DNA of 64,000 nucleotides, taken from sequence record NC_091964.1; one strand, written 5' to 3'. Shown piece after piece: positions 60,521 to 63,969 of the stretch (position 1 is the first letter of the stretch; each line of letters opens with the position of its first letter). Below the pieces are notes generated by a model that was given only the letters and a program-made list of their open reading frames with translations, searched no databases and had not been told where the DNA came from. The translations under genes and the position numbers were made by a program.

Positions 60521-60560
60521 TATCCTGTTCACTTAATCATTTTATCTAATGGAGTTTACC

Positions 60561-61187
60561 ATGTTCAAATTTATCAAAGAAGCTAAAGACCTGTCCGCTG
60601 CTAACGTAGATGCAGAAGTAATCAAACGCGCCCAGAAACGTTTTAACGGCGTAGATGCGATGGTATTCGGTTGGGTTGTACAATCAGTAGATAGCGGCAA
60701 GATCCTGTGGGCTGTAGCAGATGTAGGGTTCAGCAAAGATCTGGTTCGTCAGTTCGGTATGATCTGCATGAACGAAGGTAAGCCGCTGGTTTACGTTAAC
60801 ATGAAAGACCTGGCGTTCTACGTGCCGGAACTGGCTAACTCAATGATCAGCTGGGATACTACTTCAGTTTCCCTTGGCCTGAACAACGCGATTGTAGTAG
60901 GTACTGCCTACAGCACGATCGCAACAGTCTCCAAAGCAACCCGTCTCTTTAACGAAGGCCGGGCTCGCGAAGCAATGTCAATGAACCCACCGGTTACAAT
61001 CGTCTCTCCGAAAGAAGCTGGCAACGATGACTACATGACTCTGGTCAATAAAGCACGTCGTGAGAATGGCATGTTGGTAATCGGTAATGATGTACCGGAA
61101 GCACATGTCAAACAGATCAGCGATTATGCAGAATCTGTTCTGATGGTAGAAACAGTCCGTATGGTTGCTCTGCCTAAGGCGAGCTAA
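60561..61187 (+). CDS. Early protein, probably highly expressed (208 aa)
   Basis: Extended early promoter at 60490, SD GGAG, strong codon bias. Confidence 0.65.
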   Translation: MFKFIKEAKDLSAANVDAEVIKRAQKRFNGVDAMVFGWVVQSVDSGKILWAVADVGFSKDLVRQFGMICMNEGKPLVYVNMKDLAFYVPELANSMISWDTTSVSLGLNNAIVVGTAYSTIATVSKATRLFNEGRAREAMSMNPPVTIVSPKEAGNDDYMTLVNKARRENGMLVIGNDVPEAHVKQISDYAESVLMVETVRMVALPKAS

Positions 61188-61191
61188 TCAG

Positions 61192-61232
61192 ACAGCAAAA
61201 AGAAGGGCCCGAAGGCCCTTCTTTTTTTTTTG
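61192..61232. terminator. Bidirectional terminator, copy 2 of the identical 41-bp repeat
   Basis: Identical to 27697-27737. Confidence 0.85.
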
Positions 61233-61234
61233 GT

Positions 61235-61600
61235 TTAGCCTTTGATCTGACCTTGCCTAATAGCTGCCATGTCAGCGGCAACCGTATCCTTATCCGTAAT
61301 GATCTTTCCTTTAGCATTCTTCGTCGCGTCTTCCGCCGTCTTTCTTTCCTCGGCTTGACGCAATTCACAATACTTGATCATCCACTCGCAGTCCTCAGGT
61401 TCATACTTCATGAAAGTGTCGAAATCCATATGGAACCTGTCCCATACTCCAAAGCGTTCATAACGCTCAGCGTATAAGTATAGGATGCTGTGATACGCAT
61501 TTGTCTCTGCCTTGTGGGCTTCTATTAATGCGTACGGATGTTCCTTCTCGTATCTCTCATCGTATATCCCGTTATCTAAATCATAGGCGCGGCGTAACAT
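61235..61600 (-). CDS. Tail assembly chaperone T-like / T4 gp51-like domain; may be made as a -1 frameshift fusion
   Basis: FHMDFDTFMKYEPEDCEWMI resembles the EFxxMTPxE motif of GT-type domains; frame is open back to 61768. Confidence 0.5.
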   Translation of the reverse strand: MLRRAYDLDNGIYDERYEKEHPYALIEAHKAETNAYHSILYLYAERYERFGVWDRFHMDFDTFMKYEPEDCEWMIKYCELRQAEERKTAEDATKNAKGKIITDKDTVAADMAAIRQGQIKG

Positions 61601-61620
61601 CACCTGCGCCTGTAAGTTAG

Positions 61621-63435
61621 TTAGGACATGTCGAGACTGGAGTAGTCCATTTGCTCTTGGGCCTGGGCCATTGCTCCCAAATTCCCGACTCCGAACGTCG
61701 ACAGGTCGGTGAGAGGCATGCCCCCCGCTTGTGAGATCTTGCGTTGGGCTAGGATAAAAAAACCCGTATCAGGATCAAACGGCAGGATGAGCTTGTTCTT
61801 CAGGCGATCAGGAACGTTCTTGTGCTCGCAGGCTTTACACGGCGTGTTCGGATAACCGATGATGGTTGTACCGATTTCCACGAGGAACTCTTCAATCCCA
61901 CCGATAAGAGCATCGAGGATCTCAGGAGCCGTAGAAAGCGTTTTGAGGATAGTACGAATCTCATCCTCACCATCTACCGAGTAATAGTTCTCGGCGTCGT
62001 CTTCGTCGTTGTAGATACGAATTTCGCCAACGTAATGGCCCCAGCGACAGATCTGTTCGATAGAAGTGATAGACTGAATCACCTCATTACGCTTTTGATC
62101 ATCATCCGGGTTAGTTGCCATCGCAACGTCAACGGCCTGGTTAACTGTAGACAACCAAGCGCGGCCGATTTGCAGCTTCTGAGCAACAGTCGGAGAGCGG
62201 AAGATAAACTCACGGTTTTCAATACGAACAGAGTACTTACTGCTCTTCTTGAATTGCGCTTTGTAATCTGCAACGTCTTCCGCCGTCATCGGCGTGGAGA
62301 TACCACGGCTCAGATACTGCATTTGCTTATCGTTCAACTTACTGCGATCGATAAGGTGCATGCGGGCAGGGTTAGCACGGAACGTACTGACTTCGCCACA
62401 CGCCGGGTCGATACACGGAATAGAAACCATCACGCCTTTCGGGTAGATGACTTTGGCCAGTGCCCAGGACAGGGTCTTATGGTCTTCGTCATCGATGATT
62501 TCGCGCAGGTCCATCGGGTTACGGACAGGGAAGTTAGTTGCAGTAACCAACTTCAACGCAGCTTCGTTAATGATCTCACGGAAGATGAGGTCGTCAACAG
62601 AACCGGTCATGCCGTTAGTATCCAGGCCGACCTGCATACGAGCATATGCCAGACTACGATCCAGTTCGGCCAGGAAGCTTGCACCTGCCGGGCTTAACTT
62701 AACCCAGATGCCCGTGTTGGTCAACGGGACAGTTACCGGACTACCCATGGTCGTACCGTACATGAAGCGGTCGAGTGCATCGCCACCTTCAAGACGTTGG
62801 CCCGGACCAACTGCCAACTTTTTGCCGGACGGCAGCATAGCCAGCTTCTGCGGTTTACCGTTAGCATCGTTATACGGGAAAGCTTGTCCCCAGTCAGAAC
62901 CTTCGCGCTGAATACGACGCATCATGATATCGTCTTTCGGCGATACGCGAGCGGCCTGCTGACTGTTAACCATCCAGATGAAGTCACGCTCAGACTGAAT
63001 GTCTTTACTACCGGCCAGTACCGTCATGTTAGGATCAGTAGTAGGAGGCAAAGCGATATCAGCACCGTAAGGGGCATCTTCGTGCATGAACACCGGTTGC
63101 AGGTTACGGATGTTTTCCGGATTGACTTCGTAATCTTCGCAATCATCCCAGATAGACTTTTCCTGCGCGGGATCTTCCTCTGAGCCTTCCTCAGCCGCTG
63201 GAGGAGTTTGTTCCTCTACTACTGGCTGCGCTGATACAGGCTCGGGTTCCGGTTGCTTAACCTGAGTAGGCAATTCCAGCTCATCTACCGGAGCTTCATC
63301 CGCTAAGATATCTGCCGGAGGAGGAGTAGGGTTACTTTCAGGCAGTGTAGCTTCCGCCTGAGTAGCGATCGGTCCCGGCGGTTGAATTGGTTCAGGGATT
63401 GCCCCCAAACCGACTTCTTTATCTTGTTCAGACAT
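61621..63435 (-). CDS. Tail assembly chaperone G-like / T4 gp26-like protein with Pro/Glu-rich N-terminus (604 aa)
   Basis: IPC...C and CKAC, FIFRSPTV; slippery site 45 codons before the stop; SD AAGG. Confidence 0.5.
   Translation of the reverse strand: MSEQDKEVGLGAIPEPIQPPGPIATQAEATLPESNPTPPPADILADEAPVDELELPTQVKQPEPEPVSAQPVVEEQTPPAAEEGSEEDPAQEKSIWDDCEDYEVNPENIRNLQPVFMHEDAPYGADIALPPTTDPNMTVLAGSKDIQSERDFIWMVNSQQAARVSPKDDIMMRRIQREGSDWGQAFPYNDANGKPQKLAMLPSGKKLAVGPGQRLEGGDALDRFMYGTTMGSPVTVPLTNTGIWVKLSPAGASFLAELDRSLAYARMQVGLDTNGMTGSVDDLIFREIINEAALKLVTATNFPVRNPMDLREIIDDEDHKTLSWALAKVIYPKGVMVSIPCIDPACGEVSTFRANPARMHLIDRSKLNDKQMQYLSRGISTPMTAEDVADYKAQFKKSSKYSVRIENREFIFRSPTVAQKLQIGRAWLSTVNQAVDVAMATNPDDDQKRNEVIQSITSIEQICRWGHYVGEIRIYNDEDDAENYYSVDGEDEIRTILKTLSTAPEILDALIGGIEEFLVEIGTTIIGYPNTPCKACEHKNVPDRLKNKLILPFDPDTGFFILAQRKISQAGGMPLTDLSTFGVGNLGAMAQAQEQMDYSSLDMS
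61720..61765 (-). promoter_or_regulatory. Candidate -1 ribosomal frameshift signal: slippery G GGU UUU UUU plus downstream hairpin
   Basis: Minus strand 61765-61756 GGGTTTTTTT; 6-nt spacer; stem GCCC-AA-CGC / GCG-GG-GGGC (61749-61720). Confidence 0.55.
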
Positions 63436-63444
63436 CGTTTTACC

Positions 63445-63969
63445 TTAGTCTACTTTGGTTTCGAACTGAGGCTTAGCTTCCGCCAGCGCCTCGCGGGTTT
63501 CTTTAATCAGGCCGACATCGTTGCCTTTAACTTCGCCCAGTTTTTCCAGCACTTCAATAACCGGCATGAAGTTGTTCATGAAGTCCTGAGTGAAGGTGAT
63601 GTTCATGTGCTCGAAAGCAGACATCTCCGGCAGGTACTCCATTTCGCTACGCGGCGGGTTCTTCGCCAGCTCAGCGACGCGTGCAGAGAGTGCGTCGTAC
63701 TGAGCATTAACATCTTTCAGCGCAGCGATGGCCAGTTGCAGACCCGGCATTACATCAGGGTTTGTTTCCTGGTAACCCGGAATAGACTGCGTGACATCAA
63801 CGTACATACGGGCGAGTTTACGAACGTTGTTGCGGATCTCGTTAAATTGAACGAGCGCTTTAGCCAGGACGTTCAGGCCTGAGTTTTCTTTCTTCAAACG
63901 CTGGGCACGTTTCTGAGCACGTTGGTCAACGTTTTTCTGGTTCTTGCGCTTATTTTTAGAAACCGGCAT
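63445..63969 (-). CDS. Hypothetical protein with basic N-terminus and coiled-coil (174 aa)
   Basis: MPVSKNKRKNQKN...; SD GAGGA; co-oriented with the 604-aa gene. Confidence 0.6.
   Translation of the reverse strand: MPVSKNKRKNQKNVDQRAQKRAQRLKKENSGLNVLAKALVQFNEIRNNVRKLARMYVDVTQSIPGYQETNPDVMPGLQLAIAALKDVNAQYDALSARVAELAKNPPRSEMEYLPEMSAFEHMNITFTQDFMNNFMPVIEVLEKLGEVKGNDVGLIKETREALAEAKPQFETKVD

Follow-up and report, generated by a model that had tools for sequence, protein, structure and literature searches.

Are two neighbouring open reading frames (ORFs) of a jumbo phage, annotated as separate genes, really two genes, or are they the two parts of one gene that is read in two frames? The question arises towards the end of a 64,000-nucleotide stretch of sequence record NC_091964.1 (the whole of which we call the window), in a region that is identical (100%) to Serratia phage PCH45, a nucleus-forming jumbo phage. 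Two ORFs lie there on the minus strand, both of them "hypothetical protein" in the PCH45 GenBank record, and the frame of the second (ORF2) is -1 relative to that of the first (ORF1). An earlier interpretation made from the letters alone, hereafter the sequence-only reading, had proposed that a programmed -1 frame change at two consecutive Phe codons joins the body of ORF1 to the downstream frame, yielding a pair of tail chaperones in the manner of lambda G and GT. The elements on which this proposal depends are as follows.

63435-61621, minus strand: ORF1, 604 aa, the short isoform if read in the 0 frame

61777-61775 and 61771-61769, minus strand: two TGA codons that shut the -1 frame just 5' of the heptamers

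61765-61759, minus strand: heptamer G_GGU_UUU, overlapping the next one

61762-61756, minus strand: heptamer U_UUU_UUU (last base of Gly558, then Phe559 and Phe560), the proposed -1 shift site

61762-61238, minus strand: the -1-frame coding unit, 175 codons from the heptamer to the last sense codon, with its stop at 61235-61237

61603-61235, minus strand: ORF2, 122 aa from a GTG, or 121 aa from an ATG at 61600 (the GenBank version)

When the sequence was read again, the coordinates of both ORFs, the two heptamers, the -1 relation, the upstream TGA codons and the late start codon of the downstream frame all agreed with the sequence-only reading. ORF1 codons 558-560 are GGT TTT TTT (G558 F559 F560) and create both heptamers in frame. 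The first ATG, GTG or TTG of the PCH45 -1 frame is found at codon 53, with none earlier, and the annotated ORF2 represents the 3' two thirds of the -1-frame unit. Taken singly, the open stretch of about 55 codons in PCH45 is only mildly unusual; the pattern across its relatives lies far beyond what chance should give, and to judge by these sequences a chance origin is very unlikely.

The comparison on which this statement is based began with a tblastn search with ORF1, which gave 198 phage records, mostly at 20-35% identity, from phages whose hosts include Pseudomonas, Erwinia, Serratia, Vibrio, Ralstonia, Klebsiella, Salmonella, Burkholderia, Xanthomonas and Bacillus. The set that was compared comprises 33 lineages, namely 24 named phages (spanning PCH45, phiKZ, 201phi2-1, RAY, a Bacillus phage and Halocynthia phage JM-2012) and nine metagenomic relatives of PCH45 (44-95% identity). 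An extra sample of 35 IMG/VR loci was selected by a degenerate DNA pattern derived from an eight-residue conserved block, and our case does not rest on it. ORF1 belongs to the Chimalliviridae core gene cg18, which corresponds to Goslar gp081, phiKZ gp077 and RAY gp267. Table S3 of Prichard et al. 2023 gives this gene as hypothetical and as not confined to phages that encode chimallin. In the linear record of Erwinia phage PhiEaH1, which begins within the ORF1 homologue (positions 1-1343), that homologue is unannotated.

The anatomy seen in PCH45 is strictly conserved. All 24 named phages and all nine metagenomic relatives have the downstream ORF in the -1 frame, the -1 frame is open across the overlap in all 33 lineages, and no relative has a -1-frame stop between the Phe-Phe codons and ORF2. 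At the homologous Phe-Phe site 29 of the 33 lineages have T_TTT_TTN, whereas the other four have G_TTT_TTT (Phabio and FLC9), A_TTT_TTC (PA1C) or A_CTT_TTT (pVa-21), all still with U_UUU or U_UUC in register. An X_XXY_YYZ heptamer in the 0 frame, the canonical feature of bacterial -1 shift signals, is thus present, and its seventh base is variable (T, C, G or A), as expected for the Z position of such a heptamer. The IMG/VR sample gave a similar picture, with T_TTT_TTN in 32 of 35 loci and G_TTT_TTY in the other three. With respect to length, the run has seven or more U's in 28/33 lineages and in 29/35 IMG/VR loci; over all 68 loci it measures 7-9 in 57 and 5-6 in the rest. One of the two heptamers noted in the sequence-only reading, U_UUU_UUN, therefore stands as a conserved site, whereas G_GGU_UUU, which is limited to some close relatives and the Klebsiella phage clade, was rejected as one.

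Codon choice at the site points to selection on the nucleotides themselves. The first Phe codon is TTT, rather than TTC, in 19 of 19 lineage representatives, compared with 39% TTT in the same genes (P = 1.6e-8), and the base that precedes it is T in 16 of 20 representatives, compared with 31% (P = 9e-6); since the 20 representatives used for these statistics are kin to one another, the P values overstate their independence. The pattern spans phages with hosts from Pseudomonas to Bacillus and G+C contents from 35 to 61%. In 22 of the 33 lineages a -1-frame stop precedes the heptamer by 6-18 nt, which means that nothing 5' of the site is held open, although these stops may be only a by-product of the conserved residues there. 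With a stop just 5' of the site, any earlier accidental shift would end at once.

We consider it almost certain, on these comparisons and those that follow, that recoding of some kind takes place at this site, and probable that ORF1 and "ORF2" are one recoded gene with a ribosomal -1 shift at U_UUU_UUU. According to this model the majority of expression would terminate at the ORF1 stop and give the 604-aa protein, while a fraction would move to the -1 frame at U_UUU_UUU and continue for 173 codons, giving an isoform whose length by arithmetic is 560 + 173 = 733 aa and in which the same body would be extended by a flexible linker and then a small domain of helices. As mechanism we consider it most likely that tRNA-Phe slips on host ribosomes, either in tandem or in the A site; in the P and A sites it could re-pair perfectly one base back. 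The rate of slippage would probably be low and fixed, with no conserved RNA stimulator involved. The two isoforms would probably act in tail-hub assembly at a set ratio, as lambda G and GT do, a role that we propose because of a remote likeness of ORF1 to the T4 gp26/gp51 hub-assembly chaperones. The comparison shows the anatomy and its strict conservation; the ribosomal nature of the shift, its efficiency and its function are what we infer.

If no recoding took place, ORF2 would be an independent small gene that is translated from its own ATG or GTG, or by reinitiation past the ORF1 stop, and the open -1 frame preceding it would be a by-product of the overlap. GenBank records indeed annotate separate genes, and an ATG is found at -1-frame codon 53-54 in PCH45 and most of its close clade, so that a start of its own is possible for ORF2 in PCH45, yet this start is not conserved. 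The alignment has no conserved Met column there, and the first ATG, GTG or TTG of the -1 frame wanders between codon 10 and codon 92, with none until codon 87 in phiKZ, 89 in AgentSmith and 92 in a metagenomic relative (L033). In contrast, the -1 frame counted from the site is 151-178 codons long in all 33 lineages (the 0-frame tail past the site varies between 10 and 53 aa), and in the IMG/VR sample it is 152-183 codons long in all 33 loci in which it reaches a stop, versus a median of 12 codons for the +1 frame. The 46 ORF2 homologues that have been called as genes are all only 107-156 aa long, which implies that all of them were cut at arbitrary internal starts.

The coding signal, moreover, begins at the site and not at those starts. 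When the PCH45 -1-frame translation was used in tblastn, alignments to distant phages began at residues 1-3 and covered the 3' end of their ORF1 genes. In the -1-frame alignment there are conserved columns about 30-45 residues past the site (an aromatic residue in 23/23 lineages and a Gly next after it in 15/23), and these precede any start codon in phiKZ, AgentSmith and L033. Conserved coding is also evident in the 210 nt past the ORF1 stop (the gp77 stop in phiKZ, where the annotation treats this stretch as intergenic). Here, in phiKZ, 201phi2-1, Phabio and PA1C, the -1 frame is free of stops, its pairwise identity is 39% and its BLOSUM62 score averages 114, while the two alternative frames contain 1-10 stops and score close to 0. 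In the PCH45 clade, identical residues are encoded by identical codons at a frequency of 0.42-0.52 along ORF1, which rises to 0.73 from the Phe-Phe codons to the stop, a classical mark of a second reading frame. Considering also that the -1 frame opens at the heptamer and is so often closed just upstream of it, and that the Phe codon choice and the preceding T appear to be under selection, we rejected the independent-gene explanation, to which we would give very little probability. A conserved U-run, an open -1 frame and synonymous-site conservation in orthologues are the observations by which the sequence-only reading had suggested that its frame change be judged, and conservation across the relatives supports that frame change on all three counts.

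A still simpler explanation would be that the split is an accident, either a homopolymer sequencing error that divides one gene or a decaying pseudogene. Homopolymer runs are error-prone in some sequencing chemistries, yet the same -1 relation is observed in 68 loci that come from independent isolates and metagenomes and from two decades of sequencing, run lengths vary from 5 to 9 while the frame relation remains constant, and both frames are under purifying selection. Furthermore, the ORF1 family has 1199 clusters of relatives (E <= 0.001), and among the 150 best representative clusters, which were inspected for fusion, there is no in-frame fused version; every match stops at the end of the protein, shortly past the site. 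The comparative data thus contradict sequencing error or gene decay, which we rejected as having a negligible probability, and no gene here is broken. The two-frame split seems to be obligatory, which argues for selection on the ratio of the isoforms.

We also looked for RNA elements that might stimulate a ribosomal shift. The sequence-only reading had pointed to a hairpin close to the heptamer:

61749-61720, minus strand: weak hairpin of 4 + 3 pairs with an internal loop, beginning 6 nt past the heptamer

This hairpin is located where it had been described and occurs in the minimum-energy fold, but its proposed part as a stimulator found no support, since its stability is like that of shuffled sequence (z = -0.87 over 106 nt and z = -0.21 over 60 nt) and it does not recur in other clades, where no comparable downstream structure was found and the z-scores of the 60 nt past the site scatter around 0. 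It was therefore rejected as a conserved stimulator. In the PCH45 clade the 20 nt past the heptamer are nearly invariant, as expected from double coding, which leaves no covariation by which the hairpin could be tested. Rfam gave nothing at the shift site, and inspection by eye revealed no obvious conserved Shine-Dalgarno-like element upstream of it.

These negative results are relevant to the rival that deserves most attention, namely that the frame change occurs in transcription: the multisubunit RNA polymerase of the phage, or that of the host, would add one U in the U7 run, and translation of such transcripts would give the same long isoform. The sequence itself does not separate ribosomal from transcriptional slippage. 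The lack of a conserved RNA stimulator for ribosomal shifting and the prevalence of runs of seven or more U's are both in keeping with a polymerase that slips, and UUUUUUU is avoided in every frame of E. coli genes, polymerase slippage being offered as a reason (PMC4066793). Against this, the unit that is conserved consists of six bases, T_TTT_TT, in exact codon register with the seventh free, and there are only 5-6 T's in VP4B, PA1C, pVa-21, Phabio, FLC9 and six IMG/VR loci. Runs of that length are poor substrates for polymerase slippage, for which 7-9 or more are usual. The lineages with 5-6 U's nevertheless hold a tetramer or heptamer in register. We know of no report of slippage by chimallivirus polymerases, and count this too against transcriptional slippage, which on balance we regard as unlikely, though far less so than the independent-gene and artefact explanations.

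The ribosomal shift, which we prefer, has several points to contend with. There is no conserved downstream RNA structure across clades, nor an Rfam match at the site, and polymerases too can slip on a run of 7-8 U's. Heptamers that do not end in T, i.e. those ending in C, G or A, mostly recover the seventh T from the preceding codon (6/7, versus 4/11), which fits a constraint on run length and is what slippage by a polymerase would favour. U_UUU_UUU is described as a modest shifter in E. coli, weaker than A_AAA_AAG (PMC5009743), although a weak shifter would be apt if the long isoform is made in a small, fixed proportion to the short one. In PCH45 the ATG/GTG of ORF2, with a weak AGG upstream, could also yield a free ORF2 product, and the 733-aa long product is a prediction from sequence. 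Lastly, for the proposed function, the likeness to the T4 hub chaperones is remote, with no match in Pfam, NCBIfam or among solved structures.

What, then, could the products of this gene do? ORF1 falls in PHROG 4585, to which no function is assigned. There was no Pfam match in nine family members, no NCBIfam match and no match to a solved structure by sequence or profile, and Foldseek against the PDB returned nothing; with regard to tail-assembly-chaperone families in particular, there was no match in Pfam, NCBIfam or PHROG and none at a meaningful score in Foldseek. A confident AlphaFold (AF2) model built from a 141-sequence alignment (pLDDT 86, pTM 0.81) has a mixed alpha/beta body, with the Phe-Phe site within a helix. 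Residues 1 to about 90 are Pro/Glu-rich, variable and predicted to be disordered. Cys 341, 346, 533 and 536, which form two distant pairs, are at least 90% conserved across the 141 members, a pattern that suggests a structural zinc site.

A Foldseek search of BFVD with this model returned, besides orthologues and several myovirus proteins that are uncharacterised, one entry with the name "Baseplate hub assembly protein, bacteriophage T4-like" (E = 4e-5 over 293 columns, with a target-based TM of 0.46). For a comparison of folds, the T4 gp26/gp51 family offers no solved structure. PHROG 150, "baseplate hub", was matched by three of 84 family members (best E = 1.6e-5), and several depositors label relatives as hub assembly proteins, one of them citing T4 gp26. 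As for presence in the virion, 201phi2-1 gp136 and gp135 are without the note "identified using mass spectrometry" that gp138 and gp139 carry, and Goslar gp081 is absent from the 28 proteins of the virion model. ORF1 would thus fit a non-virion assembly factor, judging from sequence and predicted structure, with support that is remote and indirect, and a tail-chaperone role for its products is a reasonable suggestion to which we attach moderate weight.

The -1-frame part gave even fewer leads. Its predicted model, which is modest (pLDDT 64), begins with about 50 residues of disordered linker and continues with helices, with a well-defined helical domain at residues 90-150 of the unit for which the pLDDT is above 90. 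The sequence-only reading had seen a likeness to GT-type domains here, which we could not recover: 27 members had no Pfam match, NCBIfam gave none for this frame either, there was no match to a solved structure, and Foldseek against BFVD with the modest model gave the unit's own orthologues alone. A GT-type identity was consequently rejected, as no relatives by Pfam, solved structure or fold were found beyond the orthologues.

How does this gene compare with known recoded genes? A frameshifted pair of tail chaperones is almost universal among long-tailed phages, T4 being a known exception, and we know of no lambda-type pair described for phiKZ-like phages. Lambda G/GT, and with it the frameshift conserved in the tail genes of long-tailed phages (Levin 1993; Xu, Hendrix & Duda 2004, both as cited in PMC5009743), resembles the cg18 arrangement in three respects: the shift would provide an assembly protein with a minor isoform that has a C-terminal extension, the layout is kept far beyond sequence similarity (33/33 lineages and the 35 IMG/VR loci), and there are hints that the products are absent from virions (201phi2-1 gp136/gp135 and Goslar gp081). 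The differences are greater, however. ORF1 has 604 aa and a globular alpha/beta body, versus about 140 aa for G, neither ORF1 nor the -1-frame part has sequence or fold likeness to G, T or tail-assembly-chaperone families, cg18 does not lie between the tube and tape-measure genes, and its heptamer is U_UUU_UUN. Cg18 is therefore not a member of the lambda G/GT family, its size, the homology of both its parts and its genomic place all being wrong, and what remains of the "G/GT-style" description is an analogy in gene layout and perhaps in role.

The closest homologues of known role, although remote, are the T4 hub chaperones. T4 gp26 and gp51 are hub-assembly chaperones, gp51 being needed for assembly and absent from particles (Leiman et al. 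2010, PMC3004832). The likeness of ORF1 to them is a remote one in fold and sequence (the BFVD and PHROG 150 matches above), whereas in size they differ, the T4 proteins having about 200-250 aa and ORF1 being two to three times larger and without a Pfam match. To our knowledge there is no frameshift in T4 gene 26 or 51. Gene 26 does have a second, shorter product, made by internal initiation, which shares the C-terminus and not the N-terminus.

Two further systems are instructive. Phage G, a jumbo myovirus, has a frameshifted tail chaperone pair, gp181/gp182, that was undetected in virions (PMC8570332), although that pair is of the classical small type and occupies the classical position between the sheath and tape measure genes, while cg18 represents another family in another place. 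In E. coli dnaX (PMC5009743) a -1 shift on a homopolymeric heptamer gives two isoforms, tau and gamma, with a common N-terminal body, and cg18 likewise has a homopolymeric heptamer and a shared N-terminal body. Nevertheless, dnaX has A_AAA_AAG, an upstream Shine-Dalgarno-like element and a strong downstream hairpin, whereas cg18 has no conserved stimulators, and the dnaX shift shortens the product whereas that of cg18 would lengthen it.

A full-text literature search, with most subscription journals outside its reach, found no earlier description of the cg18 shift, in agreement with the impression in the sequence-only reading that such recoding had not been described for nucleus-forming jumbo phages. 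The large 2016 recoding review (PMC5009743) makes no mention of phiKZ or jumbo phages, and mentions of "gp77" in papers on Goslar, PhiPA3 and PCH45 refer to other proteins. That a recoding site is conserved in a different protein family, within a core gene of a much-studied phage group, is strongly supported by the sequence comparison.

Should the shift prove real, the two genes now drawn would have to be replaced by a single recoded one in hundreds of jumbo-phage genomes. Public records are at present inconsistent with regard to the downstream frame, which appears as a gene of 74-182 aa or, in phiKZ, as intergenic DNA: a 218-nt "intergenic" gap precedes PHIKZ076.4 (L012, 3179-3398), RAY gp266 is drawn with a 136-nt overlap (L014, 3368-3503), and the metagenomic relative L033 (3474-3693) has only a 44-aa call. 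The phiKZ gap, RAY gp266 and the 44-aa call are all parts of one unit of 151-178 codons.

If a protein distantly related to the T4 hub chaperones is made with a conserved shift, this would also tie the gap in phiKZ-like phages to the T4 exception, and would give a handle on the nucleation of the very long phiKZ-type tails. One may go further and speculate that cg18 is the missing counterpart of G/GT in phages of the phiKZ/T4 style, that a hub chaperone of the gp26/gp51 type took over the role of two isoforms in a fixed ratio, and that the non-canonical RNA polymerase of the phage, acting on the U run, may make the shift in place of the ribosome; we regard this combination as tentative and rather doubtful. 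If a phage polymerase does make it, programmed transcriptional realignment would thereby be described for the first time in a nucleus-forming phage. Either way, the site offers a natural test case for ribosomal versus transcriptional slippage, in cells where transcription in the phage nucleus and translation in the cytoplasm are separate.

Two features lie just beyond the 3' end of the ORF1/ORF2 unit:

61197-61226: GC-rich 13-bp hairpin with flanking A and T runs, terminator-like in both directions

60549-61187, plus strand: convergent ORF of 212 aa, with the terminator-like hairpin between it and ORF2

The hairpin, at which Rfam gave sRNA matches that are all sub-threshold, looks like a two-way intrinsic terminator that serves the ORF1/ORF2 unit and the convergent ORF.

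The neighbours of ORF1 are a virion RNA polymerase (vRNAP) subunit, a head protein, a gp78-like gene and helicases, and the PCH45 tube and sheath genes (gp154 and gp155) are elsewhere in the genome. Directly upstream of ORF1, and co-oriented with it, is an ORF of 174 aa (63445-63969, minus strand) that occupies the place of phiKZ gp78, and the block vRNAP subunit - gp79 - gp78 - gp77 is common to phiKZ, 201phi2-1, Phabio, PA1C, RSF1 and JM-2012.

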